Assembly (NCBI GenBank): GCA_001643675.2
Contig: LSRY02000003.1
Location: 930,001 to 994,000, forward strand
Direction: 5' to 3'
Source of the DNA: Monocercomonoides exilis PA203
Lineage: Eukaryota; Protista; Preaxostyla
Length of the DNA: 64,000 nucleotides
Under the pieces are notes generated by a model. It worked only from the letters and a program-made list of their open reading frames with translations. It ran no database searches and was not told the DNA's origin. Made by a program: the position numbers and the translations under genes. Position 1 is the stretch's first letter, and each line of letters begins with the position of its first letter. Below, in pieces: positions 21,415-59,200 of this stretch.

Positions 21415-24400
21415 TCAGACTTGCTCACTCTCCTCTATTTCTGTCAACGATTGAATCACTTCACCCAAAGTGAGTCTGCAATCTGGTTCATCTGCCCACA
21501 TCTTCTCCATCAGTTCAATCAACTCTTCCCTTTCGATTCCTTCTGTCAGCGGTCGTACTCCGTCTCTCATCATCTCCTGTGCTTCCTCAGCATCACACTC
21601 GCTCAAAGGTACTTCCCCAGTTGTCATTTCATGGAGAATCAGTCCAAGTGTGAAAGCAACTGCCTGTTCAATTCCCTCATCTTCGTTTCCCACTTCTGGT
21701 GCCTTCCATCGCTTCATTTCCTCTTTCTGCTTTTCATCCTCCAATTCCTCTGCCAAAACAAATATTTCATTTGTTTCTTCCTCGACAAAGATTGTATATG
21801 GGCACAGCTGCCTCGCCATCATTTCCACTCTTTCATCATCAACCGAAATCAAATGCTCAAATAGCTCTGCCACTGCCAAAACCACCTCTTTTCCATCAAC
21901 AAGATCCATCGCTCTTGTTCCCAATGTGAAATTGCCTTGCACTGAATGAATCACTGAATGCAATGTTTTGATATTCTTCTTTTCCTTCTCTCGAAATGGC
22001 TTCTTCGCTGATATTACATTGAATGAATTATTTTGTTGAACATCAGAAACAGAAGCATTCTCTGAAAATGGCAATGGAGGTTCCAAATCTGGAAGATCAT
22101 TTTCATTCAGAATTTCATCCTTGCTCATTGAAGGAGGCTCTGGAAGATCTTCTTCATTGTCAATGAGAAGTGGAATTTGGCTCGTCATTCCTTCCAGTAA
22201 TGTTGATGGCATTTCACTCATCTCAAAGCTCCCTCCGTTGTTTTCCCTTCTTCTCTTCTCAATCTTCCCCATTATCTGCTCATTTTCTAATCTCTCTTTT
22301 TCAACTTTCCTTTCAACTTCTTTCAGTTTTTTTTTCATCAGCACAACAACCACAACAAACAAAGCAACAAAAATTAAAAGAGCAACAACACAGCCAACAA
22401 ATGCAAATAAGCTCCATTCAATTTTGTTTTCTCCTTTTGAGATTATTTCATCATCTTTTGGTTGAGTAATACTTGCATTCTTCAAGATGAATGATTGCGT
22501 TGATGAAGGAGATTCCTTATTTCCAAACAGAACGCACACGCTCACTTCTATTTCATTTCCACAACCACTGATCAGATCTCTTGCCACACTTCCTTCTGCT
22601 TCTCTTTCTGATAAAAATCCATTTGAATCAAAATCATAATGTTCAATCTCTTTCTCTTCTCCTTTCCTCTTCACAACTGAGAATGACAGATTGCATGGAA
22701 GAAGAAGCATTCCTTTGAATGTCAGCTTCATTCTATTTGTCTCTTCTTTTGCTTCCACACTTTCCAGCACAGGAATGAAGAATGATGAATCTCTCTCAGA
22801 AACAATCCCTTCAAAATTGCACCCTTCATTCAACATCCAAAGTGATGTGCTTCTCTCCAATCCATCTCCTCCTTTCAAACTCACCACATTCAATGTTCCT
22901 GAATCTGAACAAATGATATTCCTTCTCAGTGATGGATATCCTTCAATTGATGGATTATTGTTCTCAAATCTTCCATCATTAACAGTCATTTCCCCTCCAC
23001 TCATCGTAATTCCACCTTCTGGTGAATTCGACAATGTTGTATCTTTCATCATCACTGAACTCTTCACAACTTCAACAAGAGATCCTTCCCATCTGCACAT
23101 CTCTTCTTCCTCATTCGTTTTCCCATTGATTTTCTTTTCTCCGCCTTCACCTCTTTCTCCATCAAACATGCATGCCTCAAGCTGCACTTCCCTGCTTTCT
23201 CTCATCTCCATCATGCTTCCTTTCCCATTCATATTCACGCATTTCGCAAACGAGCAATTAGTCACTCGTATCTCTTCTTCTGCTCCATCAATCACCATCA
23301 CACATCCATCCGTCAACAGAGAAATATTCTCAAACCTCATTTCTTTCATCTCAAACTCTGCTTTCCCTCCAACAACAACAACAACATCTGCATCTCCTTC
23401 ACACATCACGTCCCAAATGTTTGTTTCTCCCATCAGCACTTTCGACTCTTCACACAATACAATCAATGATGCTCTCACATGCAAACTGCTGAACTCTATT
23501 CCCCACATATTCAATTCTCCACTTTCCACACTCACAATCGTGTTGCCCAACTTCAGCTCAACAGCAGATGAAATAAACTCACAACTTCGCATCTCCATTG
23601 AGCCATTTTTCACTTTCAAAATGAACTTGTGACTTGCCTCAAATTCACCTCCAAACTCAAATGAGCATCTTTCCACTGCACTCTCATTCACAAACTTCAT
23701 GATGCTGTCCTCCTCTGATGTTTTTTCTATCTTCCCATCAAAATGGATCTTCCCCTTTGCTTTCTTCACAGGCTCCATCCTCACATCCCCAATCACACAT
23801 TCTCCTCCTATCTTCCCTTCTCCATCAATAAGAATCATATTCACAACACTTCGTTGAATGTGTTGCACGCCATTGCTGATGCTCTCACATGGCGCATCCT
23901 GTCTTCCACATTGCACGCTGTCGCTCCCTTTCACTGAGACAAACACCTGTGCAGAATAATAGAATGTGATCAGCGGAATCAGATCAACATCAATAGTCCC
24001 TTCTCCATCACTCCCACACATCGAGTTGTTCAACTTCAATGATTCCTGACTGAAGTCCAGCAAAAACAGTCTTTCATTGATCTGCGAGGCAATCGAATCA
24101 CATCGGATGAACACATCCTTCCCCACAAACGCATCATTCATCATGAATCGGATATTCTCCAATCTCAGCCCAAGTGGTGGTATTTCCTTGTTGGAGCATT
24201 CCACATTCGGGTCAAGTGCATCAATCATCATCCCTCCTCCCCTACCATTCCCTGTCGAGCACACACACATCCCAAATGAGCATCCTCTCACTTTCACCTC
24301 TGACTCCCCTCTCTTCATCAACATCTTCATCCCTCCCCCTTCCAAGCTTCTCTCGCTCATGCACTTCGTCACCACGCACCCTTCGATCTCACATTCCATC

Positions 24401-27400
24401 CCAGATGAAAATGATCCCACACTCATCACACATGCTCTGCTCTCTGAACATGTGATGTTTGTGAACGAGGAGTCGTTCACTCTCACCCTTTGCTCTGTGT
24501 TTTCTTTTGCTTTCTTGATCAACATGTTTGAAGTGGATGGCTGACTCAGCGAAATCAAACTGTTTCCTGATATTGTTGTGTTCGATATCGTCATATTCAT
24601 CACATCAACACTTTTCACATCTGTTGTGAATTCCACAAACCCTTTTGCCAAATTAAATTGAGAAAGGGTGCAATCCTCAATCACCACACTCCCTCCATCT
24701 GCTTTCATTAAACAATATTTCGTTTCCTTTGTTGCATCCTCACAAATAAATGAGCATCTCATGATGGAAAGTGATGTTGCTGAGGATGAAGTTGAGTGAA
24801 TGAGCGAAGAGTGATGCAAAAGCTCGTTGGGAAGAGAAAATGAAATATTGGTGAATGAAAGACAAACATTCAATGTTATCATTCCTCCTCCTTCTTCTTC
24901 TTTGCCTTCATTTCTTCCCCCCTCACTCACTTTCAAACCTGTGCCTTCTTTCTCTCCCTCAATTGATACAACTGAAGTTTTTGAAGAAGATAATAACAAA
25001 AATGATATTGCTTTCTGGAGCAATCCTGATCCCACAATGTTGACGTGTGATTCACCTTCTCCAAGTGGTTCATATCTCAGTGAGACAAGATGATCAATCG
25101 ATGAGCATGGTGCTTCAGAAAACCCACACCCACTGAAGTCTCCTCCTTTTTCCTTCGAAGCAAACCCATACCCACTCCAGTTAACCCACAAATACACAAC
25201 CAGTGGAATCACATATCCCTCCTCTCCTGTTGTCTTCCTCTCCCATCCACACAGCTCATCCAATGACTTCAACTCCCCTTCACTCATCTCCCATTTGAAG
25301 TTCCCTTTGTTCACAACCTCACTCAGATCCCATCCTGAAACAAACATGTTCTTCCCTTTCCAAGCATTGCACCTTTCAAATATCATTTCTTCAAGCACAA
25401 AGGATCCAATCTCTTCAGGAAGCTCAACGAATATTCCTCCTCCCATTCCTCTTCCTCCATCCTCTCTATCCTCTGTTGGCACTTCACATTCTGATAATTT
25501 CACATTTTTCATTTCCAAGTTCCCCACATTCCCCACTGATATCATCATCCCTCCCCCTTTCATTCCACTTCCACCTGAGCATCTTGATGAAAAATTGCTT
25601 TCTTCAATATTCACATTTCCTCCTTCTTCATTCATCCCAACATTCAAACATCCTCCTCCACTCCCACCAACCATTTCCACCTCCACTCCATTCACTCTGC
25701 TATTCATAATCTCCAATTGAGCTCCACTTGTCATTGTGATTGGTGATTTCCCATTCACCTTCAGTGTCACTGAACCTTCCATCACAAATCCATCAACAAT
25801 CAGATTCCCTCCTGCCATCTCAATGATGCTGTATCCTATCTTTCCATCTGTCATTGCCCCACTTTCAAATGAGACTGAACAGTTTGTAATTTTGAGTGTT
25901 GATGTTGAGTGAATGAATGCACTTCTCCTTGAATTCAACTGACCTTTCACAACAAATGAAAGTCTCCTCATTGTCAGTGAACTCGAACAGCCAACAATAT
26001 AATCTTGTGCAGCCGATCCTCCATCACTCACATTCACTCCTATCCTCTCTCCATCGGATGACATTATTCTGCCTGAAATTATCACATCAAATGATGGTCC
26101 TGTAATTTCCTTGGTTATTGACGAAGATGAGACAATTTCTATTTCATTCACAGTGCTGCTCATTCTCGAGTTCGCACAATAATCAACTGTCAAACACCTG
26201 AATTCATCAAATCCACAATGATTGTGGTCCTTCCCATATCCTCCACTCCCATCAACAATCACCTTTGTTCCCATTGTGCACAAATACGCAAAAAGTGGAA
26301 TCACTCCACTTTCATCCCCATTTTCACTCCCGCACAGTTTCAACACATCTGATGGAATGGTACTTGTGTCAAAAAATGAAAATGAGCTGGTATTCACTTT
26401 TGACTCCAAAAGCACACCACCCCCACAATGAACAAACACATCCTTCCCATATTCTGCCACATTCTCATTCAATTTCGAAAACTCAACATCTTGTCCAATT
26501 GTCAATCCACATCCTCCACTCTCCATCAACACAAACATCCCTCCCCCTCTCCCTCCATTTCCCCCATAATTCTCTGCCTTATTCCCATCAATCACACTCG
26601 ACCCATTCACAACCACTTTCCCATTTCCCTTCAATCCAACATATATTCCTCCTCCCTTTCCACCAACACAACTGCACCCATTCACATTGCATCCATCAAC
26701 TGTCAACGTTCCACTCGTTCCAACTGTTCCTTTCATCCATCCTCCATCTCCCTCATTCTTCACAACTCCACTGATATTGCATCCTGAACAAATCACACTC
26801 ATCATTCCTTCTGAAAATTCAATCGCTGAATGATCATTGAATGTCAGCCCTTCTTCAATCACAAATCGTTCCATTTTCAGACTCCCGCTCTGCGCATTCA
26901 CAAAACTGTATCCAAATGATACACTCGATGTGCTCTCTGATATATGAGCAACTGAGCAGTCTGTGAGTGTGAGTGATGAGCTGGTTAAAGAAATGAGTGA
27001 TGTTGCACTCGATAACGAAAATGGAATTTGGAACGCAATGTTCTTTATTGAACTCGCACTCTGAACATTTATCAAATACGAAGATGTCATTCCGCTCGGC
27101 ACCCTCACACTCACATCCGTCTTGTTAATCCCACAATACACCTCCCATTCATATAACCCCGCCATCGACACAACTTCTCCCAACTCAAACCCCGAATCCA
27201 ACACAATGTTCTTCTTTGACGAACTGAATCTGTTCTGTGAAGCAAACGCGATCGTTTTGCATGGAAAATACCCAAACCCACAAAACCACGAGTCATACCC
27301 TCCATACCCATTAACCACATTCCCCACATGTGCTGCTCCTGAAAATGCATCAAAAAACACATTCAATGGGAATATTCCCATCCCTCCCTCATTCCGGTCA

Positions 27401-30197
27401 TATCCCATCAGCTCATCATAAACAGACACATTTCGCGAGAAATTCAGCTTTGTGGTTGTTATTGTCCCACTCACTAGCCTGCTCCCATTCACAAACACAT
27501 CTTTCCCTCCCAATGTTGCACTGCAACCAACAAAACTCACTGATGTTATTGCAAAATCAAATGAGTTATCTGCCAGCCACAGCATCACCCCTCCTCCATA
27601 TCCACTGCACTTTGTTTTGTTGAATTTTGTTGTTCCTCCACTGTGTGATGTTGATGTTCCAATTCGAGCTTTGCTTGATGGCGCTTCCAACTCAACTTTA
27701 ATCCCTCCTCCATTCCCATTCGCACACTCACACCCTTCCATCGTTGTATTCCACACCACAAATGTCTCTCCACCCTTCACACTCTTTGCTATCACAACCC
27801 CGCCCCCTGTTGTCCGATTCACATTCCGAATTGTCACATTCCCCAGCAAACTTTCTCCAGATGAAGATCCTGCTGATGATGGCTCAGCAAACAGAGGTTG
27901 ATTCATTTTCATATTTTTGATCTCCACATCAATCATCTTCAGCTGCTTCAGTGCAACATCAAACACAGATGACGAAATTCCACTCCCTCCTGATGTGGAA
28001 GAACTGATCGCCACATCCTCCAGCAAAAGAGTCCCACTCCCCACAGACACCACAAACACACTCGGTGATGGGCTTCTCATCGAGTTGTGATCGATCCCCA
28101 CATGCCCCACCTCCAGTTTACCAGTAGATATGCTGAACAGCGTTGGCGAAGAGGTAGAAAGCGCACTTGTCCCAATCACGCTCACTGTCTTCCCTCTCCC
28201 AACAACAGAAATCTTCTTTTCCCCAACATTGATTGCCGCCCCTTCACTCACATGCCTCCCTCCCTGCACCGTGACTGTCGAGCTCAGCTGTGCCATGCTC
28301 GACTCCACTGCATGCCCCACTGTCTTGCAAGGAGTTGCCTCGCTCATTCCACACAGATTGCTCGTGTCACTTCCACCCACCCCAACATACCGATCCTTCA
28401 TTCCTTCCTTCAGCCAGTCCTTCTTTTGTGTTTCCTGATACACCCAACTGCTTGAATAATATCTATGGCACACCCTATAATCATTGCTGTTCGTTGTATA
28501 TGATTCATAAAAAGGATTGCTTGATGAGAAGAGATTGTAATAGTCCTGGAAAAGCACATCATGGCCATATGGAGTGGAAGCGTTGCAACTGCAATTATGG
28601 AAGAAGAAGAAATAGCAATAATGATAGTTGCTTGGAAGTGTTGATTGACTTGGAGCGAAGTTCATGCCTCCACCATATGATACTGCTGAGCATGAAATGA
28701 ACCGCATGCTACTCATTTTGAATGCAGCTGGAACATTGTAGAAGCACATTCCTCCGCCAGAATCATTTGTAAGTGAGCACAAAGTGAACAAGCACTCAAA
28801 TACACAAGAACTCTCCCCTTTGCCACTTTCCGTTCCAATACAGGTAGATCCAGAAACCTGAAAAGATGCCAGATAAAGTCCTCCACCATTATTTTTTCCA
28901 TTGCAGCTCGTGAATTCACACCCACTGATCCTGACACAAGAAGCTATCGAATAAACATACATTCCTCCACCACCATAATTTCTGGAAGAACAATCATTGA
29001 ATGAGTTGTTCTCAATCTTTATTGAATTAATTGCATAGCACATGATTCCTCCCCCATCATAATATGCAGTGCAATCGTTGAATGAGCAATATTTCACTGA
29101 AAGAGTTCCCGATGCCAGATTATACATGTAAATCGCTCCACCATTTGAAGTTCCATCTGAATAAGAACTACTTGTCCCAGTAGTTTTCGATCCATTCCAC
29201 TCGCACCAAGTGAACGAATTTGCCCCATTGTTTGTCTGATTCTGTCTCTCTGGTCTCGAAGGATTCCCATCACTCCCGCTGACTGCAATGTTCTCAGATC
29301 GAAAACATCTGACAAATGAAGTGTTTGAGGCAGATAATGAAGATGAAGGGTTGTTGAGTGAGGAAACAATTCCCCCATCATACACATCCCAAACAGATGA
29401 AAACGAACAACAGCCAATAAAAGTGGAGCTGGCTTGCATGGGAGCTGATTGGGGCGGTTGAAATGGATGAGGTGATGAAATGTTTGCGAACAAAGAATGC
29501 TCCAAGAAAATGAAGCTGCTGCCAGCGCACCCCACAAACGGACAAGAAGCAACAACGAACGAAGAAAACGCACAAAGCGCAACAGAAATGGTTGTTTCGG
29601 ACACAGAGTGAAATGGAGGTTGGCACGCCTCGACAAGCGAACTCACAAGCCCATTCGCCAATGATGGAAGCACACTGACGTTGCAAAGCATAACCCGGTT
29701 GCCTCCTGCTGCCGAAAGGATCGGAGATGAAATGCCAAACCCTGTGCGAGAAGAGACGACCAGGCACGACCAAACAGCCAAAGACGATGAATCAACAACT
29801 TCGCAAATGTGTTTCTCAAAAGTCGGCTCCAAATTCAGGCTTCGCAATTCCAGGCTTGTATTCGCTTCAATAATAGCTGTGCGTATTTTGTTGGAGCTAC
29901 TGACGCAATAAGGCACACAACCGTCTGCCCAAGGCTCCTCGGCTGCAAGTTTTCTATAATTTTCATTAACGAAATGAAATGTGAGATTTAAACTCAAAAA
30001 ATAGGAATATCACTCTTGACACACGTTTTTCGTGCGTGTAGAAAAATATCGCTTCCCGACCCTTCGGTACCTTCTCTAAAAACACATTCGTTGCTATTTG
30101 AGAATACTCCAACATAATTGCAACTAAACTCTGCATACTCTTTGCTATTGCACTTTAAAAATAGTAGTATAGTCAGCAATAAATATGCCATTCTCAT
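21415..30197 (-). CDS. Large single-pass surface protein: signal peptide, beta-helix (pectin lyase/Pmp-like) repeat modules, TM helix, C-terminal kinase-like (pseudokinase) domain; frame break near 29996
   Basis: N-terminal ORF 30197-29994 (MRMAYLLLTILLFLKCNS, signal-like) overlaps the 2860-aa ORF by 4 nt. Five G.D...CG....(P)C.T/S caps, many GGG(I/M/V)(Y/F) and F..C.A..G.DVF repeats, TM WSLFAFVGCVVALLIFVALFVVVVVLM followed by KKK, kinase C-lobe RWKAPE...AFTLGLILHEMTTGEVP...P..RLTL without HRD/DFG. Confidence 0.8.
22478..23109 (-). repeat. Copy A of a 632-bp coding repeat shared (inverted) with 57296-57927
   Basis: Reverse complement aligns without length difference to 57296-57927. Four 60-nt windows checked by hand gave 78-90% identity. 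Encodes EEEMCRWEGSLV...SFILKN. Confidence 0.92.
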
Positions 30198-30882: not shown

Positions 30883-31165
30883 AATTCTCAAAATATATGT
30901 GGCAAAATCTTTTACTTCAAACATTTTCATTGAAAAATTATGAACTTTTTATTGACTTTTTGAGATCAAAAATCACAATAAAAATGAGTCCATTTTTTGA
31001 CATTCGTGAAATATTAAAAACCTTTTTGTTTTGATTTCAACAATGCATGTTTGCAGATATGAAAATCAAATTTTTTTGAAATATGAGGGATCAAAACAAA
31101 GTTGTGAGTGAAACAATTTTTCAATCCATTGTGCAAAAAAAGCTTGAAAGTCCATATTTTCCCAC
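30883..31165. repeat. Non-coding dispersed repeat, inverted copy at ~62063-62340 (probable transposon-derived relic)
   Basis: gatcaaaaatcacaataaaaatgagtccattttttgacattcgtgaaatattaaaaacctttttgttttgatttcaacaatgcatgtttgcagatatgaaaatcaa matches the reverse complement of 62161-62265; flanks ttgtgcaaaaaaagcttgaaa and aattctca also match. Confidence 0.85.
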
Positions 31166-31167
31166 AT

Positions 31168-31411
31168 ATGTCCGAATATATTTGAAAAGTTCCTTTTGTT
31201 TAATTTTCAAATAAAATAAAAGATTCATATTTCGATCAAATTTTTGTTCCCACTTATGAAACTTTTCCAGAATGGAAATAATAACATTTTCGTAATTTTG
31301 TTTTCTAATACCAAAATTTGGTGAGTGGGAACAGATATTTGATCGAAATATGAAATTATTATTCTATTTGAAAATTTAACGAAAGGAACTTTTCAAAAAA
31401 AATTTAGACAT
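31168..31411. mobile_element. Palindromic (foldback/MITE-like) element, ~88-bp arms and ~65-bp spacer
   Basis: Left arm ttgaaaagttccttttgtttaattttcaaataaaataaaagattcatatttcgatcaaatttttgttcccactta (31182-31256) vs reverse complement of the right arm (31322-31395) ttgaaaagttcctttcgttaaattttcaaatagaataataatttcatatttcgatcaaatatctgttcccactca; pairing extends outward to atgtcc/agacat. The MITE label is inference. Confidence 0.7.
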
Positions 31412-31429
31412 TTATTTATCGAAAAAAAT

Positions 31430-34605: not shown

Positions 34606-34860
34606 GGAATTTATATATTCTTCGATGAGATTCATCGACAGAAGCCAGAAAGCGATGCTTCAACACGAAAATGATAATTCCTTTATTGTTTGAGCAACTT
34701 TTGTGAGATTGATCATTTTTTCTTTGTTATTTATTTATTTTTTTAAAGAGGTATTTATTAACACATATATTTTAATGGAAATTCGTACAGATTGAAGTTT
34801 GGATGTTTCGTTATACTGTTAAAATTGCCTGTTTCATGCTTGTTTGAAAATGTCGGGACC

Positions 34861-44600: not shown

Positions 44601-47600
44601 GTCTGATAAGTCGGATGCATCAGCCGGTGCATCTTCATTATGTTTTTCATCATCATCATCATCTTCCTCTTTATATCCTTTCTCACTTACAACTTCTGTT
44701 CCCTTGAATCAATCTGAGATTAAGCAATACACCATTTACGAGCTGCCTACAGGAATTTCTCTCAAATTTTTAAGTTTGCATCCGTTCCAGCTGCTTCGGA
44801 TGTTTTTGGTGAAGATTGACACATTCACTTTGCCTGCTGGCTGCTCGTTTCCTTCTTCAAAATCAATAAACTCATTTTCATCATCATCATCATCAACAAC
44901 AACAACATCATCTTCTTCTTCCTCCTCCTCTTCTTCTTCTCTCTCCCCTGACTTTTCTCTTTCTCTCTTCTTCCCATTCAACATGAGCGATAGTTCTTCC
45001 ACTTCATCTCCACTCCCACTCATTTCCACTCATCCAATAACTGTTCCACAAACATTCCGAATGGCACTGGCAAACAGCCTCTTCTTGTTCTTTGCTGTCA
45101 CAATCGGATGGATTGATCAGCTGGAACTCCTTTTGCAGCGTTCTGCTTCAAATTCATCATCATCATCATCTTCTTCTTCCTCCTCTGCTTCTTCTGCTTT
45201 CTCAACCACCACATTTTCAGCAGAGGCTGATGACTTGTATGATTGTGTGCTTTGCTGCCTGTGGATTTTAAGAAACGTTCCAATCTCCACCTTCAGAGCT
45301 TGGCTGGCTGACAATCCGACTATCAAGCCTTCCTATTCAACTGCTTCTCCAACCTCACATTCCTCTTCTTCTATTTCTACTTCGTCATCTTCATCCTCTT
45401 CTACATCTTCTTCGAGTTCATTCACTTCAGAGATCTTTGAATCATCAACATCAGCTTCTTCTTCCTCTTCCTCTTCCACTCCTTTCCTCACAAAAGAGCA
45501 GAAAGTCAATGGAATTTTGAAGTTTGTGGCGGTCTGCTTTTCTCTCTTCAACGAAGGTGCCATCACCAAGCGGCTGAAAAAGGAGTACAGGAAATGGCAA
45601 AATAGTATCTATAGGCCAAATTCGTCACTCAAAGCGGAGGCGGTTTTGGGTGTGGACATGCTCTTTTATCCAGCAATCACCTCGCCAAACACAGTGCATC
45701 CGATGTATCCTTCTTCTATCACTTTCAATCAGTCGCTGTCTTCTTCCTCTTCTTCTGCTTCTTTGAGCACAGCTGGCGATGTGATTGCAGATGGCACAAT
45801 GCCAAAGTTCCAAATGTCTGCCACTCTCAATCCACAGCTCTTGTCTTCTTCGAATGCATCTCTCTCCTCTTTTCGCTCAACTTCTCTGCGAAGTGTAGCG
45901 TCTAGTGCAGAGTTCCAAAGGTATTCTGGAATGTCAACTTTGTCGTCTCAATCAACAATGCGGCAGACAGCAAAGAGAAATGCACAGAGAACGATCAGCC
46001 AACAAAACTTGAATGGATATGAAGAGACAGCAACAACAGCAGTCGGGACAGTTCAGTGGATTCTGTTGCATTTGTTGCATGAAACGATGATTGTCGCATT
46101 CTACGGAAGGTGTTTTGTGGAGGAGCTGAATGAAAACACACTGAAGAAGGCGAAGGATATTGAAAGTGCACTCAAACTGAATAGCAGAAATGGTAAACAG
46201 GAGAATAAAGAAAGCTTTGCAAAGAGTGGGAAAGAAGCAAACACAGAAAAAGATACTAAAACAAAACATAAAGCGCAGTTGGATGCTTCTGATGTGCAGT
46301 GGGGTTTGGCAGAATTTGTGTCAGACACTCACTCTCAAAACACTATGCAAAAGCCGAAAACACACAATTTGCTATTGGAGAAGAATGCTTCTTCCGAATT
46401 TTCAGGTTCAAAGACGCTGAGTGGGGCTGGAGAAAAAGAGCGATCTGGAACAGCCCTCTCAACACTCGGCGGCACATCGAAATTGACTCATTTGGCTTCC
46501 ATTTCAGGTCCAACCCCATCTGCAGCCCCAGCTTCATTTTCTGCACATTCACTTCAGAGGCTGTCATCGACAATTGAAAAGAAACACTTTATGATGCAAA
46601 AAGAGGAAGAAGCTAAAAGGCTCGATGGGTTGTGGATGAACCGTGTTCTGAGAGATGTGGCTGATGAGATTTTGAGTTCGTCTTCAAAAGGCAACAATTC
46701 TTTACACTCATCAACTCAACAACAAGCATCTTCAATCTCAGTTTCGTCAGTCAGAAGCACTTTTGAGAAGAGCAGCGATTCACGCACACTTTCTTCTACT
46801 TCTTCTCCGTCGCCTTCTTCTCCTTTCGTCCAATCTTCATCTTCAGTTCAAAACTTATCTTCGCGTCTGCCGATTGATCATTTCACTTCTCCGATGTCGG
46901 TCTTTGTAGATGAAGCAGAAACACTCGGAACGTCACCAGCTGTTGTCACTGTGCTTCGAAGGGGAACTTATCTGCTTTCAGCTTCTTCTGCCAATAAAGT
47001 TAGTGCTGTTAAGTTACAATTATCAAAGAAGGCGGGATCTTCAGATGGAAGCAGTGAAAGAAGGCTGATTGCAGCTTGCGTTCCATCTCCAGATTCATCT
47101 TCCTCTTCCTATTTTTCTGCTTTTTGGACTTTATTCAACAAAATGCTCTCTCTTTTCATCTCTTCTGCATCTCAGCTTTCATCATCATCTTCAAGATTCT
47201 CTTCTTCTTTCGCTCCTTCTTCCATCACTTCATCCTCATCCCAGTCTCTTCACGAAGCCAGCGATCGTTCAAGCATCGCAGCTCTGCTTTCACCTCTTTT
47301 ATTTGCACTGGGACGTCTCTTGGCGAGCCATTCAGGCCATTTCCTCTTCGAAGAGCAGCATTTGGAACAACACTGTGCTTTTCTGTGCTTCCAGCTGGTT
47401 TATGCGCTCACTTTGCCAATTCCTATCATTCGTGATGGCGCAGGTTCATTGCTTTTGCTGCTGTTTAAGCTCAACATGCACACGAGTCGCACAATTCTGC
47501 GGATGAAGACTCAATTGACAGTTGCATTGACACAATTACAGAATGTAGGAGAAAGTGAAGAGGCAAGATTATCGCAGTGTCTGCTGGAGATGCGCAACTT

Positions 47601-49642
47601 TGTTCCTTCGCTTTTCATGAAAAGTCAAAAAGTGCAAAGCATTGTGAAGATGTATTTGAAGAAAAAAGGAGCAAAAGAGGCAGAAGTTTCGAATGACAAG
47701 GATAAATCAAACATTTTTGTGCCAAAACGAGAAATCAACAAATATGAATCTATTCGTCTTCTGCGGAAGCTTGCACGTGAGTGGAGTGTGACGATTGCGA
47801 TGCAGCGGCTTATGGAGAGTGGGAAAGAAATAGTATCAAAAGTGGCGACTGTCTCTCGAATGGGCAGAAACGAGGTGGAAGAGAAAGCAGCCATTGCGTT
47901 TGAGATTGCCGAGTCCTGTGTGGGGAATCCTGTGCAGAGGCTGGCTTGGATGGAGCGTGTGGTGATGATGCAGGAGGAAGCTGGCTGCATCGAGCAGGCA
48001 GCTATTGCACAGGTGATGCGGTGTGCTATCATCTTGGAGATCTACACTGCTCTTGTTGCTTTGGGATATGCGGAAAAGCCTCCATTTTTTGATTTTGCGT
48101 TCAATGTGGAGACACTCACGAACGTTGCATCTCAGACAAGTTTGACTTCAAATCAATCACAAACTTCTTCATCCTCAATGAACCCATTGGCCTCTCATTC
48201 TCCAATGTCATCACCAGGCACTGGCTCAGGAACAGTATCAACTCTCCAGTCCGCAAATTCGTCTGTTTCTTCCTCATCCTCTGCTTCCTCTCAGAGCTAT
48301 CGTTTCTGCCCTTCCTCTGTCTTCTCCCCGGCCATTGCCGTTGCATTCAGCAGGGCGATTGTTGGGTGGGAGGCGCATAGAAACCAGAGCGCTGCTGTGC
48401 TGCTGAGCGGAGACTTGCTCGCGGAGATTATCCAGAGCGGCACATTCACTTTGGACTCAGCAAAGGCAGAGATGGAAAGATGCTTGGCTCTGCTGCGCCG
48501 GGCGATGCTGTATGAAATGGAGCTGAGCCTCTCAGAGGTGCTGCTGAAGCTCATTCAGTGCACTTACGACATCCGGCAGATGTCAACGCTCCTCAAACAG
48601 ATGCAAACAGCTGCCGAGTCGCTTGCTTCCAGCGAGGGATCTACAAGAACGGTGCATTCGTTCTATCATCTGCTCTTTTTGGGAAAGCCGTTTGATGCGC
48701 TGAACCTGAACAAGCGGAGGTTCATCTGGTGTGAAAGTGGGATTGTGCGTTTGGGGGAGATGATGGAGCTGCTGAGGAAGAGATATGAGACAAAGCTGTT
48801 TAAAGAAGGTGCTTATGGGGCAGGCACGAAGGGAGGAGAAGAGAAAAAGAGAACGATTACAATAAAAGGTGAGATCAGGGCAAAAGAAAAGGACAAAATT
48901 ACTTCAGAAAGCGAAGAAGCTTACATCATTCTAAATGCAGTGTGTCCTGAGAGTGCAGTGGGCGAGGAAATGAAGAAGCTCGACTCATCACTCAACCAGC
49001 AGATCGTCAGGAAGTTTTCATACGACCGAGGCTACACAGCCTCAGGCTTGCCTGCCAAGTCGATGGCAGATGCCTGGCTGTGTCGCACCACTCTGAGTGT
49101 CCAGGTTTCCTTCCCGTTTCTTAGCAAGCGGCAGGAGGTGGCTTCAGACGGCGTGTCGGAGGTTCATCTGAATCCAGCGCAAAATGCGGAGTCTGACGTA
49201 AGGCAGAAAATGAGGAAAATACAAGAGGCATACAGCGAGCAGCCTTTTCTTATTTCGAAGCTGGAGCCGTTGCTCAGCGGATCATTGACTCCACGTTTGA
49301 TTTTATTTATTTAATTTTTTTCATAATTTTATTTTATTTTATTTTATTTTGATTATTTCTTTGTGAATAAAATTCTTAGAGGTTAATGCAGGGCCTTTGG
49401 CGATATGGGAATGCTTCTTAGTGGAGAAAAGGGAAGAAACGAGCGTTGAAGATCGGAAGCGCATCATGCAAGTGTTTGCCGAGTTTATGGAACTGTGCCG
49501 AATTTGTCTGGATAAGCACGGACGTCATTGTGCCTCAAAGGAACTGCACGATGTTTTTGTTGATGGCTTTAATAAATACGCTGATGAGCTGGAGAAAGAG
49601 GAAGGAATGTGCCACATTCGAAGAATTGATCACATTCTTTGA
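35614..49642 (+). CDS. DOCK-family (DOCK-C/D, zizimin-like) Rho/Rac/Cdc42 GEF, ~4,590 aa; exons 35614-35802, 35858-36115, 36173-36261, 36315-49294, 49380-49642 (true start uncertain)
   Basis: EPMFFSFCLYDVDKKEKLSEDFYYDF (DOCK-C/D N-terminal motif), RQPFGW, DHR-1 C2 (LLYLYPQ...RNVQLEV...YHSHPASFGDEVKIRLP..L.PTHHILFTFYHITCK, ~39350-39700), FSWFLFSLVWKS, DHR-2 (NPVQRLAWM, RKFSYDRGYT, RTTL...SFPFLSKRQEV, LNPAQNA, LSGSLTPQVNAGPL, the last formed across intron 49295-49379). Four GT..AG introns keep frame (13779 nt = 4593 codons). Confidence 0.9.
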
Positions 49643-50230
49643 AAAATTTTTAAAAATTCAAAATATAAAAGCAGAATTGTTATTTGTTTGAATGATGGAA
49701 AGAATGAGTAACTTTATTTTTAATTCGTGTTTTGTTTTGTTTATGAAATTTCTTTGATACTCTACTCAAATTTTATTTTTAAAACAAGAAAAAAAAATAA
49801 TTGAGTTTTATTGAATATAATTTCAGAAAATTTAAATTTTTTTATTGTAAATGTTGCTTTGTTGGAACAAATGATCAATAAAACGCAATGAATTTTTTAA
49901 AACTGAAAACTCCACATTAACAAATTCATGAAAAGACAAACATATTTAATAACAGAATCTTACTCATTCAAACTACAAAACATGTTTCTGTTTCTTTGAG
50001 TTTTTTTTTTTTTTTTTTTTCAAACTGAAACGGCACAGATACAAAATCATTCATTGTTCTAGTTCAAATTGTTCTTTATGAATAGAAAATAATTTTTCAA
50101 ATTATAAAAAAAATGTTGTTAATTATTGTGTTTTGAAAATATATTCATTTCAAAAATAATATGGGCCGCAGGAATTTTTCATTTCCCCATTTTTCCTGCA
50201 TCCGCAATTGTGTCGAGGAGCTTCCCCAAC

Positions 50231-53200
50231 ATGAAAGCCGCATGCAATATTGTTGCGTTGTTGTTGCTTGCTGCTTACTGCTTTAATGGAGAAGGCATCG
50301 CAAAAAGGCAATATCATCAAAAATGGAACAAAGAGATGCAGGAAGGCAAGATCAGCATTGCAGATAAAAATCACGATTACAACTTTAATTGTAACAATTC
50401 ATTTACAAAAGTTATAAAACCAGCTGCCAATCACATTTACAGTGTCCAAACAAGTCTAAATATCATCAATACCTCCTTGTGTGTGAGCCATCTCAACATC
50501 ATCCCTCTCGGTGACTGTCCACTCCTCACTGCCCAACACCACTCCGCTGCCTCCATCTGCTCCTCCACTTGCACCATCCACCCACCTTCCCTCACCAACA
50601 GCCACCACCACCACTGCCCCCTCTTCCTCTCTGCCCATGCCTCCCTCGCCCTCACAAACTTCTCCCTCACCACCCACCAACCTGCCATCCTCTCCTTCCC
50701 CCTCTTCTCCACCCCAAACAATCTCTTCCCAGATGCCCACTCCCCAATCCCTGCCTCCTTCTCCATCTCCCACTCCTCTTTCTCCTCTTTCGTCTCCCTC
50801 ATCCAGCCCTTCCTTTTTTCTCCTTCTTCCCTCTCTAACCCATCCCCTTCTCCATCTCCTTCCCTTTCCTCTTCTCCTTCATCTTTCTCATCCTCATCCT
50901 CATCCTCTTCTTTTTCTTCCCCTTCCCCTTCCCTTTCCCCTTCGATTTCCTCTTCCTCTTCCCCTCTCCATATCCATCACCAATCCCATCCCCACCTCCA
51001 AATCCACCTCAATCTCCATCTCTCAAACACCCTCTTCTCCAACATCTCCTCTCCCCAATCCCCTCTATCTCTTCCATCCCTTCCCTCCCACTCACTCAAT
51101 TCATTCATCTCAACCACTTCTTCCTCTTCTCTCTCTTCCACCAACACCAACGCCAATTCAACCCCCTCCTTCTCCCTTCACTCATCTCTCTCCTTCCACT
51201 CAACCATCTTCAAACACACCCACAACCCCATCGATGGAACCATCCTCCCCAACCTCAACAGCCCATCCACATCCCTCTCTGCCTTCAACACCTCTTTTCT
51301 CCACCAAACACGCTCTTCACAAAATGCTGCTGTTGTATATGTAGGAAATGAAACTCACAGAAAAACACCTGGAAGATTGACTTCGTTTGATGTGAACAGT
51401 CATAAATTTGAATGGTGCGAATGGAATGATTCAAATGGAGGAAACGATCATGGAGGAGCACTTAAAGTTTTTTGTGTAAATGCCAATCTCACAATCACTT
51501 CTTGTTCATTCAACAATTGTTCAACAAATGGGAATTATGGTGGAGCGTTATTCAGTTACTGTTTGCAAAATGAGAATATTGCAAAATCCAATTTTACAAA
51601 CTGTTCGGCATTGCACGGAGGGGCAACTGCTATAGATGGTCGACAATCATCTTTTATTTATTCATTTTCTGATAACAGAGTGGAAAATTGTTCAATAACT
51701 AGCATTTATGGAACTGGATGGTATTTCTATATTGGTGATTTTTCTTCAAACGGTCAATTCTTATTCACTAAATGCAAGTGCATCTCAAATTCTGGTGGAG
51801 ACTCTACGGGTGCTTTAACATTTTATAATCCTCCAGGAAACAAACCAAATCAATTTTTGGTTAATGATTGTCGGTTCATAAACAACAAATTGACAAGTGC
51901 ATCTTCCACACGCGGTGGTGCAGCAATGTGTTTTTATCCTCCTTATTCCTGGATGAATGATGTAAAATTCATAATTTTCTGCTTTTTTGATGGAAATACC
52001 GCAACTAATGGAAGGGGCAATGATGTGTTCTTCAATGGCAGCAGCATCACCCAATCTCCTTTCCAGCAATGTGGATCAACAACAGAATCAAAAAGAGTCT
52101 GGAATAATGGACAAGCAGATAATACCGTGTATAATGGCTGGCTTCCGATCATCGACCAGAACAAAATAGTCTCAAATGGTGGAAGTGATGTCGATGCCTG
52201 TGGCAAAACACAGCAAAGTCCATGTGCCACAGTGGAGTATGCTCTCGGATGCGTTGCTCCCTTCAGCGATGCCTCCCTCTCTCTTCTCATATCCACTTTC
52301 ACTCCCACAAAGACTCTCACATTCCGTGCCCCAAATACAAGAATCACAGGAAATGGCACAGATACCACCATTATCGCCTCCAGTGGCATTCACCAACCAC
52401 AAAACCCACATTCACAGTCATCACAAACAACATCATCATTTTCTTCATTTTCATCAATATCAGCATCTTCTTCACCAGATCCATCTGCCTCGTCTGCCCT
52501 CTTCCAACAGACCCAGGGCTCCCTCACAATTTCTGCCCTCGCCCTCGCCCACAACTCCACAAATCCCATCACCCCCATCCTCTTCCACCTCTCCCAAAAC
52601 TCCCCTTCCCTCAACCTCAACACAACCACCATCACCGGAACAACCTCCATAACAATAAAAACACCCCTCTTCTTCCTCACTGCTGGCTCCCTCGCCCTCA
52701 ACCACACAGCAATCACCAGTCTCGCCCTCAACAGTCAAAGCATCTTCCACCTCACCTCCCTCATCGCTCCTCTCACCCTCAACTCCTCCAACATCACCCA
52801 CATCACCTCCACAGCCTCCCCCACCAGCTGTGTCCTCTCCTCTGCCACCTCCCCTGCCCTCTCCCTCTCCCTCGCCAACTGCACCATCACAAACATCAAC
52901 TCAGCTCCACAAAACCAACAGACTGCCACAGATGGCGGGTGCATCTCATTCGCCTCATCTGCCCCTGCCAACTCCTTTTCAGTGAGTGACACAATCTTCT
53001 CCACCTGCTCTGTGAGCGAGGATACAAGTTCTGGAGGAAGAGGCGGTGCTCTCATGATCGAGTTCAATGAAGGCTCACAAGTGTCAGAATCCTCCTTTTC
53101 CATAACCAATATTGTGTTTTCAGCCAACAAAGCGAGTGTTGGAAGAGATATGTATTTTGTGTGTGAATCATTTGTCGCTTCTGTGAAAGAGCCCTTGTTC

Positions 53201-56200
53201 GCCTTCATGAGAAGCATCACTCAGAAAGACAACTCAGTTGTTGGACATGACAGAACAGAGGCATTTGGCGATTGGGACGTTGATTTGTTCATATTTTTTG
53301 ACGGTTTCTTTGATGATACAATATATGTTGATGGAACATCTGGAGTGGAGAGGGCATATTGTGGACTGGAGAAGGTGCCGTGTTTGAATGTGAATTATGG
53401 GATGGAGCGTTTGAAAAAAACGCTGAATGTTAAAGAGGAGATTGTTGTGTGCGAAAAATCGTCTTTAACTGGATGTGTGGATGTGGGGGAAATGTGTGTG
53501 AAAGCAAAAACTGAGGCAATTGTGGAAATTGAATGCCAAGGACAAGTGAGTGGATCAGAAGTCTGTATTCTGAAATCATCATCTCTGACAGAAATGGAGT
53601 TCATTGGAATTGTTATTCCATCGAGTTTTAACAGAACAATCACATCAGTGATTGAATCAAATACTCAAAATGGTGAATTGCGCATGAAGAACTGCGCAAT
53701 GAGTGTGATTGGAGGGAAGGGAAACACAATTGGGTTTTTCTTGATCAAATCAACAGGGAAGATGATTGAACTGGATTCTGTCACGATATCAGATGTAAAA
53801 TCCACTGTTTCATTGTTTTCAATTTCGCTTTCGTCTGGAAATGTGAATGATCAGAACTACAAGATGAAACTGTTGAATTGCACACTGGAAGGTTTAGAGA
53901 TTGATGGAGGTGAAGAGGCAACAGTGTTTGGAGGGAGTGTGGGAGTTTGGATGGTGATGAATGGAAGTACAATTGATGGGGCATTGTCGGAGAAGAGCAA
54001 AGAAGGAGGAGCACTGAAGATAGTGTTGAGTGCAGAAGGATACATTACAATTGAAGAGAGCTCATTTGTTGGATGTGTTTGTGAGAATATGAGTGAGGGA
54101 GGTAAAGGAGGAGGGATATATCTGGATTGCAGTTCATATGAAGAAGCATTTCAACTTTCATCGATATCATTTTCTGGATGCTCAGCAACAGTTGGGAAGA
54201 ACATGTTTGTGAAGAGTGGGAATCTGGTAAACAGTGTGAATGCAGAGCGTTTTGCATTTGATTGTTCAGATTTCGAAGAGGATGGGAATGCATTTGTTGG
54301 GGAAGATGGGAAATATGGAGAAATGGATCTGCGAGTGTTTCTTGTTTCTTTGAAGTGGATGGCTGTGTCTGTATCGACTGGTGGACACGACACATTGGGA
54401 TGTGGAAGTGAAATATTCCCATGTGAATCGATGAAAAGTGGAATTGACCACATTGACAGAAGTGGGACAGAAGGAGAAAGGAAAGTGAAAGTGAAAGATG
54501 AAGTGACAGTTGAAGATATTTATTCCTTCACAGATGCACTTGCGATTGATGGATGTGTGAATGAGGGAGATGAAACCAAGCACAAGCCAATTCATTTTGA
54601 AGGTCCAATCAAAGGGAATTCTGCATCATCTGTTATTTCATCAATTCAGCCACTCGGCTTGTTATCTTTGAAGTTACAGATTCCAAGTCAATTTGAGCCA
54701 AATATGAATACGCTGATCTCATCGAGTGGGATTCTTCAGCTCGTTAACTGTTTATTTGAAATTCAATCAGCAACAAATATTATTCAATATTCGTTGATAA
54801 CCACAACAAGTGGAAGTTGCACATTGAATGGATGCAGTTTGGCGGATTGTTCGTTTGTCATATCTCCATTGGTATTAGCTTCTTCTGTTATATTTGAAAA
54901 CATCAACTTTACAAGTATTGCAAACACTGGAAGCGGTGAAGGAGGTGTTGCAAAAGTGATATTGCAAGGGAATGAAGATTTGATCATTAGATCAACAAAT
55001 GCATCTTCTTGTTCGCTTTCAACAGGAAATGGAAAAGGAGGATTCTTGTATTTGGATTGTCAAAATTGTTTGAATGAAAATCCATTTATTTTTGATACTG
55101 GCGTAACATTTGAGAACAACAATGCAACTTTTGGAAAGAATATGTTCATTTTGGGAAAGGATTTTAATTCTTCTGTAACAAATGAGTCATTTGCCTTCGA
55201 TTATTTATCAATGATAAATGATGACAATTTGTTTGTGGGAAGTGATAACTTTCACTCAAACAAAGATTTGTTCATGTTTCTGATTCCATACAACTCAATG
55301 GAGATATTTATCTCATCAGAAGGATTTGATGTGGCGCGTTGTGGAAGTGAGGAAGAGCCATGCAAAACGATGTGGAAAGGGATGAAAAATGTGGAAAAGG
55401 AGATTGGAAATAAAACAATTCAAATATCAGGATCAACAATTATTCAAGATTCATTCAACATGTCCAATTATCAGATCAAAAAGGGTGTAAAGATGGGAGA
55501 GGAAGATACAAAAGCAATGTTGAATTTTGAAAAGGCAATTGGAAGTCAACTGGAATATATCATGGTGAATGATGTTCATCTTGAATTGGCAAATATCAAA
55601 CTGCAACTGTCATCTGGGTTTGGCAACTCAGCCAAAACGATTATTTCAAATAAAAATGGAGATTTGGTGATAAGTGGATGTTCATTCTATTCAGAAGCAG
55701 GAGTGAACAATGGATTTGATTGTGTATTTGTGGATGCGATTGGAGGCAGTGTGGAAGTGAACGATTTGTCAATTGAATTGTGCAATGTTGGAAACAGCAT
55801 TTTTGTCATTCATGATGCTGGAGTTTCTTGTTATTTCTTGAATGTTCGAGTGGAATTGTTGAATGAAAGTGGAGGTTGCATTTTATCGATCAAGAAATCT
55901 GAACAAGGATTGAAGATAAATGAAGGAGTAAATGAAGATGGTGCAAATATTGAGATTGGCAATTCATCATTTTCAGGAGTGAAGAGAAGTGACAATGGAC
56001 CAAGCATTTTAGAATCGAAGAGTGACAAAAAGATAGATTTGGTTGTGAAGGAGAGCAACATTACAGAAGACAAATCAGAAAAAAGTGAAAAAGGAGGTGC
56101 AATATACTTCACATTGGGATCGTCTGGTTCAATGAAGATGATTGACTCAACAATCACTAATTGCAATTGCAGTATTAGTGAAGGGAAAGGAGGAGGGGTG

Positions 56201-59200
56201 TATCTGGCAACAGATGAAAGAGGAGAATTGAATTTTTCATTTGTGGGTATGAAATTCAGTGCAAACACAGCAAAAGTGGGGAATGATATTTTCATTGAAT
56301 GCTTCAACATCACATCGCAGATCGATGAAACCCAATTTCAATTTGATCTTCGAGAGAATCATTATTCACGAATTAATGCGATATATGGAATTGATAGTTG
56401 CGAACACAAAGAAGATACAGATCTGATTGATTTTGTAACGATTCATCAGAGTGATACAATTGTTGTGAGCAGTGCGGTTGGATCGAATGACAGACAATGT
56501 GGAACAAATGCTCTTCCATGTGATTCAATTGAGCATGGGCTGGTGCATCTGACATCTGAATATGTGAGTCTATTGTATGTTGACGCTGAGAGTGTGATTG
56601 GAAGAGAAATAAATCTGGAGGAGATGAGTTTGAGCTCGAAAAGCAGAGGTTTGTGTGAAGTTGAAGTGAAATCAGGAATTGAAAGAACGAGAGAGACTTT
56701 GATTTCAACAAGAGAAACAGTCTCATTGGTGAGAGTGAACTTTGTATTTGATTCGAATTTCATCTCTTCTCATGAATCATTTATATCACCAGAAGGAGGA
56801 ATCCTTGAAGTGATGAATTGTTCATTCAGTTCAAAACTACTGGTGGAAGATGGAAATGCAGAATTTGCAAACATTCCATTTCGCATAATTTATATGGAAA
56901 AAGGAGAATTACAACTCGATGGATGCACAATATCAAATCTTATTCTTCATGAATCTGCATTATTTCTCTCATCACCACTTTCATCAGTAATCGATTCATT
57001 AACGATTTGCCATTCGACAATTTCAAAATCTCTGGTAGATATTAATGAGTGCGGGCAATTGAAAATTGATAGACTGCTTGCTGAAAATATCACAGTTGAT
57101 GGAAATGAAGAATCATTGATATATTGCCTGTCAATGAAAAAGACAATTCAATTGGCAAATTGCACAATGGAGAAAACAACTTCAAAGGCCACAAAAGGTA
57201 AATTGATGAAAATGGAGAGTTGCGCAGATGTGAAAATGGACAGCTGCATTTTTGATGGGAGTTCAAAGGAAAGAAATGAAAAGAATTCAAATACAGAAGA
57301 AGAGATGTGCAGATGGGAAGGTTCTCTTGTGGATGTTGTGAAGAGTTCTGTGATAGTGAAAGATACAACAATTTCGAATTCATCAGAAGGTGGAATAACA
57401 ATGAGTGGAGGAAGTGTGATAATTGAGATGGGGTTATTTGAGAACAATAATCCATCGATTGAAGGATATCCATCATTGAGAAGAAATATCATCTGCTCTG
57501 ATTCAGGAACGTTGAATGTGATGAGTTTGAAGGGAGGAGATGGAGTTTTGCCAAATGCATCACTTTGTATGTTGAATGAAGGGTGCAGTTTTGAAGGGAT
57601 TGTTTCAGAGAGAGATTCATCATTCTTCATTCCTGATCTTGAGAGTGTGGAAGCAAAAGAAGAGTCACACAGAATGAAGCTGACATTCAAAGGATTTCTT
57701 CTTGTTCCATGCAATCTGTCATTCTCAGTTGTGAAGAGGAAGGGAGAAGAGAAAGAGATTGAACATTATGATTTTGATATGGAAGGATTCTTGTCAGAAA
57801 GAGAAGCAGAAGGAAGTGTGGCAAGAGATCTTATCAGCAGTTGTGGAGATGATGTTGAGGTGAGTGTTCATATTTTGTTTGGGAATTCAAATTCTCCTTC
57901 ATCAACAAATTCATTCATTCTGAAGAACAGAAGTGAGGTTGAACCAAAAGGAGATGAAAAACTCGTTGAAGGAGGAAAAGAAGGAAAATCTTATTGGTTG
58001 TTGATTGTGATTGTGCTTGTTGTGATATTGTTTATTATTCTGATAGGATTTGTTGTTGTATCAATTCGATGGAGAAAGGCAAAGAATGAGAACAAAGATC
58101 TGAGAGAGATTGTGAACGATAACATCAGAAAAGATCCGAAGGCATTTGAAATGGTGACGATGGAGATGTCGCCTGAGGAGCAGTGGAGGAGGGCAGAGAG
58201 GGAGGCAGAGAAGAACAATGAAGAGAGGATAAAGAAGGGAATTTATGGAAAGAAAATGCATCATTCTGAGTCTTCGGAATATCTTTTGGCTGAAAGTGGA
58301 TCAACGGAATACATTTTTGGAAAAGATTCTGATAAAAATGGAGAATGGGATTTGGAGAAGGAAGAAGAAACGAGAAAACAAACTCCATCACTATCAATCT
58401 CATCAGCAGATACAGACACAACATTTGTTCGGAGAGAGGATCTGTGCCCCACCACTTCATCGATGTCGAATCTGGTGGATGCAATGGCCTGTTCATCGCC
58501 TTATGAAAAGCTGATTGTGGATCTGCGAGATTCGTTGTTCATGTTGCTTCATGGGAGGAGTGAGAAGAAAGATCTGGCGATTGGCACATTGAAGGAGAGG
58601 GAGGTGACAGGAGCGCAGATGCTGTTCTGGGTGGCGAATGGAGCTTTGCACTCGCTTGAAGATGAGGAAGACGAACTTCCCTCTTTGCGAGAGCTGAGTC
58701 CGCACATTGTGCTGTTCTCGGAGCACATGGTGATCTGCATTGCGCTCCACTCCGACTGCTCCTCTTCATCTGATGATTCGGATTCTTCCTCAATCTCATC
58801 ATCAACCACGATTGTGACATCTGCAAGTGATGGTGGTGATGATGATGATGATGAAAGTGATTCTCTTCCACCATCAGCGTTTGAGGATGAGGAGGATAAG
58901 TGGAAGGAGTGCTTGAGGTGGAAGGCGCCAGAGCTGGTGATGAACAAGAAGATGGGAGCAACAGAGAAGTCTGTGGCATTCTCGATTGGGATGATGCTGT
59001 GGGAGTGTGTGACACTCGAGATCCCGTTTGGAGAATACGAAGGGGAAGTGGCAGGGCAGAAGATTGCTGATGGAGAGAAGCCGGATGAGAGGGGGGTTGA
59101 AGAGAGCGGATTGAAGAATGTGGTGAATGCGTGTCTGTCAGCAGAGCCATCGAAAAGGCCGACACTCACTGAAGTGAAGAAAGAGTTGGTTGGGCTGTTT

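Follow-up and report, generated by a model that had tools for sequence, protein, structure and literature searches.

Two receptor-like genes with a common juxtamembrane block

The 64,000-nucleotide (nt) stretch of Monocercomonoides exilis PA203 DNA analyzed here (contig LSRY02000003.1, positions 930,001 to 994,000; hereafter the window) contains two genes for giant receptor-like pseudokinases, named gene A (minus strand) and gene B (plus strand), which point away from each other and share a block of 213 codons just before the transmembrane (TM) segment (Table 1). We report that the version of the block found in both genes, referred to as the core block, is one version of an old protein domain that has spread through more than 300 genes, and that different segments of these genes have significantly different trees.

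Aligned pairwise, the A and B proteins are 28% identical across ~2,860 residues. Glycine-rich motifs are abundant in both and their Pfam matches are weak, being limited to a Beta_helix match in the ectodomain of A and to the C-terminal half of protein-kinase models in both tails. As an earlier note on this DNA had described, the paralogues are alike only at motif level over most of the ectodomain, and their TM segments and tails clearly differ. The regions flanking the block are 28% identical in protein or unalignable, and the tail of A belongs to class T1 and that of B to class T2 (classes are defined below). The word pseudokinase in that note was also well chosen. Indeed, both tails match the kinase C-lobe only, and a motif census found neither HRD, VAIK-type lysine nor glycine-loop motifs in the tail of A or in that of B. 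The start of gene A at position 30197 is plausible as well, since a signal-peptide exon begins there in a frame other than that of the main open reading frame (ORF), which fits a short intron. From this frame change, gene A probably contains one short intron between the signal-peptide exon and the main ORF; past the 5' exon, its coding region extends over 8.6 kb without interruption.

The nucleotide alignment of A and B is ungapped from the EEEMCRW to the SFILKN codons and similarity decays on either side. In a codon alignment, the two blocks are 85.3% identical over 633 nt (~211 codons), with 0.39 synonymous substitutions per synonymous site (dS) and 0.11 nonsynonymous substitutions per nonsynonymous site (dN), and the longest exact runs are 38, 37 and 36 nt. 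These values agree with the collinear, equally long block of 78–90% DNA identity described before. The sharp edges recur in the sample used for all DNA tests, which consists of gene A and the 30 loci that best match the block of B (L001–L030), each taken as the block ± 1.5 kb: between gene A and every other sampled member, similarity begins at most ~20 codons from EEEMCRW, and between members with different tails it is lost at most ~20 codons past SFILKN. Finally, a repeat finder detected the blocks as two adjoining pairs of inverted arms, 22427-22969 with 57436-57978 (543 nt, 85% identity) and 22994-23122 with 57283-57411 (129 nt, 87% identity). Together they form the longest inverted repeat of the window, with arms ~34.2–34.5 kb apart, in line with the ~34 kb of the initial description, which proved accurate on all points examined.

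A block carried by hundreds of genes

One point was absent from the earlier note on the A–B pair: many other genes carry the block as well. A genome search with the block of B gave 910 first-look candidates, of which the 40 best were scored. Except for the self-match, these are 85–88% identical to the query and are found on many contigs and both strands; the copy of gene A is not among these 40 best matches listed. Copies were also counted genome-wide with a 22-nt core of the block, allowing up to three mismatches: 159 forward and 157 reverse sites were found, against 0 for a control pattern, which amounts to at least 316 copies on both strands. At the protein level, 470 proteins match the block at E ≤ 1e-5, and the best 120 of them are all named M. 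exilis, most carrying PF07714. With a size of >300 to ~470 genes of 5–12 kb, the family is unusual among receptor-kinase expansions.

The largest gene family of M. exilis has been published as protein tyrosine kinases, 320 of 332 being placed in the tyrosine-kinase-like (TKL) group (PMC6759080), and genes of the family overlap 'unclassified repeats' in the 82.3-Mb assembly of 101 contigs (PMC8767320). Neither the block, the ectodomain nor the mosaicism is described in these two papers, in the Preaxostyla genomics paper, or in what a further text search returned. From catalytic motifs, it is justified to call the tails pseudokinases and not active kinases. Among the tails of the 117 proteins used for all protein tests (115 database matches from the best 120, plus A and B), HRD is present in 0, a VAIK-like motif in 0, GxGxxG in seven, DFG in four and APE in 113. 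The kinase Pfam matches (PF00069 / PF07714) span only model positions ~145–260, all 117 tails being C-lobe only.

Reading frames are disrupted in five of the 30 sampled loci (L011, L013, L017, L027 and L029). In L013 and L017, TGA nonsense codons occupy neighboring codon positions some 360 nt upstream of the block, and L013 carries an additional 1-nt frameshift right after the TM segment. Introns at the block edges, which exon shuffling would predict, were not seen, and the disrupted loci L013 and L017 contain simple nonsense or frameshift changes. A transposon origin of the block was considered and is ruled out by its in-frame state, the purifying selection on it and its fixed position in every gene, as well as by its divergent protein homologues, one of them in Blattamonas.

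The inverted pair as a proposed switch

The geometry pointed out in the earlier note is correct: a crossover at homologous positions of the A and B blocks would invert ~34 kb, leaving each ectodomain joined in frame with the tail of the other gene. The note compared this arrangement to a shufflon. On such a view, programmed or frequent somatic inversion would swap ectodomains and tails within a cell population. It is favored by the blocks themselves, which are collinear in inverted orientation and have the same length and reading frame, so that their exchange would yield two intact chimeric genes, and by the existence of chimeric members in the family (see below). However, the abundance of block copies on both strands of many contigs leaves the A–B pair without special relation, and the best listed matches of B exclude A. 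The Pfam scans of ORFs ≥ 250 amino acids in and beside the interval between the blocks revealed no recombinase (smaller ORFs were outside the scan), the ORFs of this size in the interval being a DOCK-family guanine nucleotide exchange factor (GEF) and an ORF without Pfam match. Short conserved crossover sites were not found either, as the arms are coding blocks of 633–696 nt that are 85% identical and share no exact run longer than 38 nt. In public runs with this DNA, contigs are 70–130 nt long and come from the assembly's own sample, and none spans the block; no inverted junction was seen in them, but at this length they could neither reveal one nor speak against it. We regard shufflon-like inversion at this locus as extremely unlikely, and the unsupported idea of a programmed switch between A and B is removed.

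Gene segments re-associated independently

For comparison of their segments, the 117 proteins were cut in four: two successive stretches of 400 residues ahead of the block, the block itself and all that follows it. The block forms a single cluster in all 117 genes, with a pairwise amino acid identity of 77–85% (5th–95th percentile). The 400 residues immediately upstream of it fall into five mutually unalignable classes (U) and the tails into four classes (T). All four combinations of the two main upstream and the two main tail classes are present (U2T2 in 86 genes, U4T2 in 11, U2T1 in nine and U4T1 in two), and association between them is absent (Fisher p 0.62). Gene B displays the commonest combination (U2T2) and gene A the rarest of these four (U4T1). 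Neither flank class shows an association with variation within the block, except for a 6.5% effect in its first 30 residues. Single genes also reveal the chimerism directly. In P0104, the upstream region and block follow P0117, the closest relative of gene A, at 67–97% identity per window; its tail follows P0048, at up to 100% per window, and the upstream region of P0048 is unrelated.

The same decoupling emerges from trees. A tail tree of 100 T2 genes has a Shimodaira–Hasegawa-like approximate likelihood ratio (SH-aLRT) support ≥ 80 on 72 of its 98 internal branches. The 11 U4 genes need eight state changes on the T2-tail tree, compared with 8–11 for shuffled labels. For several of them, the two closest tails include one from a U2 gene, at 85–89% identity versus a class median of 68%, and these re-associations are therefore younger than the tail radiation. 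Concerning the block, the distinction between the core type and more divergent types (see below) requires 21 changes on a 101-gene tail tree; shuffled labels needed no fewer than 24 and, on average, 34. An approximately unbiased (AU) test on a random 14+14 subsample rejects the core-block genes as a single clade of the tail tree (log-likelihood difference 120.6, p-AU 0.005). Trees thus differ significantly from one gene segment to another. The segment trees that the earlier note had proposed to compare are incongruent, and chimeric members exist.

A step in synonymous divergence at the block edge

Regional divergence was measured in 19 genes sharing one tail class. The dS and dN values are 0.54 and 0.16 in the 1.5 kb upstream of the block, 0.41 and 0.11 in the block, 1.17 and 0.21 in the TM and juxtamembrane part, and 1.20 and 0.19 in the kinase-like tail. 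The block dS of ~0.4, a figure that applies to the core block subfamily only, is unsaturated and about a third of that of the tail. Congruent trees and a saturated block dS, which the earlier note had named as the outcome that would refute its idea, are thus both absent. Within the gene, constraint is strongest on the block, with a dN/dS of ~0.15–0.25. Since the conserved tail core has a dN of 0.07–0.12, as low as the block, the dS difference between block and tail is not due to protein constraint. Codon usage does not account for the step either: the expected synonymous-codon identity is similar across regions (0.41–0.52), and the observed one is 0.77–0.80 in the ectodomain and block versus 0.60–0.63 in the TM segment and tail. 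Selecting genes by block similarity would not alone produce such a step if the segments had one history. Besides, the proportion of synonymous differences (pS) in the block is 0.30–0.32 for genes of like and of unlike flank classes, which also holds when gene A is compared with the rest, and its pairwise 5–95% range is 0.25–0.38.

One could argue that protein constraint alone is responsible, i.e. that an essential stalk domain was multiplied by duplication of whole genes and that purifying selection kept its DNA alike without any exchange. The block indeed has the lowest dN (0.07–0.1) at the above dN/dS, and its divergent homologues in M. exilis and Blattamonas nauphoetae designate it as an old protein domain. 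We nonetheless hold this explanation to be highly improbable. It leaves unexplained an unsaturated block dS next to a tail dS of 1.2 in the same genes at equal or lower dN, as well as a dS step that codon usage does not produce. Nor does it fit a block divergence that is equal between genes with unalignable flanks and between genes with like flanks, flank classes that assort independently, or the rejection of a common tree by the AU test.

Third codon positions also shift at the 3' edge of the block (57930 onward in gene B; same boundary in L001–L030), from A/T-rich to G-rich. Their A and G fractions are 0.35–0.38 and 0.20–0.22 in the ectodomain and block, and 0.24–0.28 and 0.36–0.43 in the TM segment and tail. 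Judging from this composition, the ectodomain/block and the TM/tail of one gene seem to have had different mutational or exchange histories.

Probable exchange after duplication

Loci L015 and L030, separated by 27 kb of contig 15, differ by ~2–4% over most of 3.3 kb; they are recent duplicates. Two patches within them are ~14–16% divergent: a large one of 1.07 kb (L015:667-1740), which runs from 0.84 kb upstream of the block into its first 0.24 kb, and a small one of 0.13 kb (L015:1886-2014) inside the block. At 62% of the differing sites of the large patch, both alleles occur in other members of the family.

Tracts of identity were compared with a null in which residues are permuted within each alignment column, keeping the position and variability of each site, for pairs less than 90% alike. 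Identical 60-nt windows were observed 14 times in the block (null 4.1), 23 times upstream (null 0.1) and four times in the tail (null 0.0). A Sawyer-type runs test in our own version gave z values of 21–79, well beyond its permutations; a clustering of variable sites can inflate such values. Linkage between variable sites reaches background by ~10 residues and is at background among synonymous sites. Linkage and four-gamete statistics are not counted here as evidence of recombination because a star-like burst followed by recurrent mutation gives the same pattern.

Such a burst is itself an alternative to be weighed, in which the core block and ectodomain were copied onto diverse tails in a single episode ~0.2 dS per lineage ago and have evolved independently since. 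The narrow range of pairwise block divergence would be expected from it, as would linkage equilibrium past ~10 residues and at synonymous sites and the lack of a recent donor for the L015/L030 patch. However, one ancient spread does not explain why duplicates as recent as L015 and L030 contain ~14–16% patches in a 2–4% background, why identical tracts are in excess between genes otherwise 80–85% identical, strongly so upstream of the block, or why some U4 and U2 genes share tails at ~85–90% when the class median is 68%. We therefore consider it unlikely as a full account.

An old domain at the base of the ectodomain

A profile of the block was searched against 1.84 billion representative proteins (E ≤ 0.001), which returned 624 clusters, with scores from 423 to ~115 bits among the best 150 listed. 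Ten lower-scoring matches were sampled; nine are from M. exilis and one is from the oxymonad Blattamonas nauphoetae. The divergent M. exilis blocks (P0137–P0262) are 32–60% identical to the core type and the B. nauphoetae homologue (P0264, BLNAU_8207) ~31–33%, which suggests that the domain is probably older than the Monocercomonoides/Blattamonas split. With ~210 residues, the block is predicted to be mostly beta-strand and has five (nearly) invariant cysteines. The final turns of the beta-helix may form its first part. The only hints of its fold are a sub-threshold Beta_helix Pfam match (E 0.054) of residues 19–58 and weak beta-helix/Ig neighbors (score 0.77) from an Atlas feature search with the block.

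Neighboring features

Besides genes A and B, the window contains the ORFs listed in Table 1, and the 395-aa ORF of the interval has no Pfam match. A second set of inverted repeats (30.9–31.2 kb with 62.1–62.3 kb, in the regions 30900-31420 and 62062-62298) belongs to a highly repeated, dispersed element whose unit measures ~270 nt and which carries its own internal hairpin (31181-31265 with 31313-31397). This element has 2,064 first-look candidates genome-wide, and most of the scored matches are 74–87% identical. It looks like a miniature inverted-repeat transposable element (MITE) or a transposon terminus and has no relation to the receptor block.

Table 1. Coordinates of genes, gene parts and other ORFs in the window (aa, amino acids)
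Feature	Position	Strand	Basis and remarks
Gene A, giant receptor-like pseudokinase	21415..30197	-	ORF list, Pfam, 5' exon; classes U4 + T1
Gene A main ORF	21415-29997	-	ORF list
Gene A 5' exon, signal peptide MRMAYLLLTILLFLKC...	29998-30197 region, starts 30197	-	Frame differs from main ORF
Gene A juxtamembrane block, NEEEEMCRW...SFILKN	22477..23115	-	213 codons; arm as detected 22427-23122
Gene A TM segment IEWSLFAFVGCVV...	22339..22422	-	Read off translation
Gene A kinase C-lobe remnant, WKAPE onward	21445..21744	-	Pfam PF07714, model positions 158-258 only
Gene B, giant receptor-like pseudokinase	50231..59350	+	3039 aa from ATG, signal peptide; classes U2 + T2
Gene B ORF	50126-59350	+	ORF list
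Gene B juxtamembrane block	57290..57928	+	213 codons; arm as detected 57283-57978
Gene B TM segment SYWLLIVIVLVVILF...	57989..58066	+	Translation
Gene B kinase C-lobe remnant	58892..59188	+	Pfam PF07714, model positions 161-258 only
Interval between blocks	23123..57282	.	Ectodomain parts of A and B, DOCK-family GEF gene, 395-aa ORF
DOCK-family exchange factor	36187-49314	+	4,375 aa; DOCK-C2 and DHR-2 matches
Choline-transporter-like protein	18165-20096	+	Pfam
5,874-aa ORF	20-17644	+	

Discussion

In our opinion, the family is most likely shaped by ordinary ectopic gene conversion and recombination between modular surface-receptor genes, A and B being two members that happen to lie 34 kb apart in opposite orientation. 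The block would be the last extracellular, membrane-proximal domain in a very large family of single-pass surface proteins, which start with a beta-helix ectodomain and continue through the block and a TM segment to a dead kinase C-lobe. One core version of it is present in more than 300 genes at ~85% DNA identity, whatever the class of the adjoining ectodomain or tail. Non-allelic conversion and recombination between dispersed paralogues, presumably through homologous repair, would keep the membrane-proximal ectodomain and the block at low and uniform synonymous divergence, and may still be going on. In addition, unrelated ectodomain and tail classes would be joined anew, in frame, through the homology that the block provides. 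Past its 3' edge, DNA identity drops, and exchange would be less frequent and the tails would diverge (dS ~1.2). At the protein level, the block may serve as a stalk or in coupling the ectodomain to the tail.

Several observations weigh against this reading or narrow it. Firstly, tails of the commonest type, T2, are also found behind blocks only 37–60% identical to the core. These tails are 66–72% identical (median, best up to 83%) to those of core genes, i.e. as close as core tails are to each other, and the block is therefore not the sole junction. The suggestion of a family-wide recombination hub in the earlier note stands on the evolutionary scale, in view of the independent classes, chimeras, incongruent trees and low dS, but not in the sense of a unique joint: block and tail have been re-paired many times, and modules of three or more kinds make up the patchwork of the family. 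Secondly, the excess of identical tracts inside the block is modest (~2–3 fold), and a genome-wide search found no single donor for the L015/L030 patch, the best matches being 84–87% identical. As no donor exceeds 87% for either patch, several small imports are likelier than one, and the patch looks like their product. Thirdly, a single old spread, and not continuing conversion, could account for much of the uniformity of dS at 0.4. The DNA and protein samples are also confined to the core block type and biased to similar blocks, and breakpoints are bounded to the block ± ~20–30 residues without being placed inside it. Finally, an AlphaFold2 model of the block from a low-diversity alignment of 60 sequences reached a predicted local distance difference test (pLDDT) score of 40, so that the fold and role proposed above are putative.

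A bolder version of exchange at the block can be formulated, according to which the core block is kept alike at the DNA level as a recombination joint, and mitotic exchange, A/B inversions included, is frequent enough in clonal populations to create new combinations on ecological time scales. We deem this very improbable; if true, it would represent a eukaryotic, homology-driven counterpart of the shufflon acting on a whole receptor repertoire.

M. exilis is the model eukaryote without mitochondria, and its largest gene family has been published only as a count of 'tyrosine kinases' overlapping unclassified repeats. The present work describes this family as giant beta-helix surface receptors with dead kinase tails, whose modules have separate histories. 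Over hundreds of genes, synonymous divergence is far lower in one juxtamembrane module than in the tail next to it, and also more uniform. It gives a handle on the diversification of a surface repertoire in a gut protist regarded as a commensal, and offers a natural system to measure ectopic gene conversion against sequence identity. Surface multigene families with segmental exchange are a kind already known, and in M. exilis such a family is not described in the literature searched.

The shufflon of IncI plasmids relies on the Rci recombinase and sfx sites. The A–B pair resembles it in geometry only, in that recombination between inverted repeats would trade protein ends while keeping the frame. 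In contrast, the M. exilis block is located on a eukaryotic chromosome and at many loci, and neither a recombinase nor short sites were found for it (as detailed above). Expansions of transmembrane kinases or receptor kinases are exemplified by the transmembrane kinases (TMKs) of Entamoeba and by the receptor-like kinase and receptor-like protein (RLK/RLP) clusters of plants. The M. exilis family shares with them, and with the TKL expansion of Trichomonas (PMC6759080), lineage-specific single-pass receptors with kinase-like tails, some of which are catalytically dead. Sequence exchange between paralogues is also seen in the plant clusters. Unlike in the TMK and RLK expansions, all 117 tails examined here keep the C-lobe only, and the ectodomain consists of stacked beta-helix modules similar to the Pmp proteins of chlamydiae.

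Other parallels come from antigen families of parasites. In the variant surface glycoproteins (VSGs) of Trypanosoma brucei and the variant-specific surface proteins (VSPs) of Giardia, the N-terminal domain is variable and a conserved C-terminal or membrane-proximal part bounds segmental gene conversion. A variable head on a conserved base, a base alike at the DNA level over hundreds of genes and mosaics from segmental conversion are likewise found in M. exilis, with the difference that its proteins carry a cytoplasmic pseudokinase and that the A–B locus displays neither an expression site nor the logic of a silent archive. Similarly, the var genes of Plasmodium falciparum (encoding PfEMP1) evolve as mosaics by ectopic recombination at conserved homology blocks and have a conserved TM and cytoplasmic exon. 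Like var, the M. exilis family is a large dispersed family of giant single-pass surface proteins with variable modular ectodomains and more conserved membrane-proximal parts. In both, histories differ between segments, and junctions lie at short blocks shared by the genes. In contrast to the var system, M. exilis itself is regarded as a commensal (PMC6759080), and the ectodomain is a beta-helix instead of DBL/CIDR domains. Moreover, the most conserved element of the M. exilis proteins is extracellular and juxtamembrane, whereas their cytoplasmic tail is more diverged at synonymous sites.

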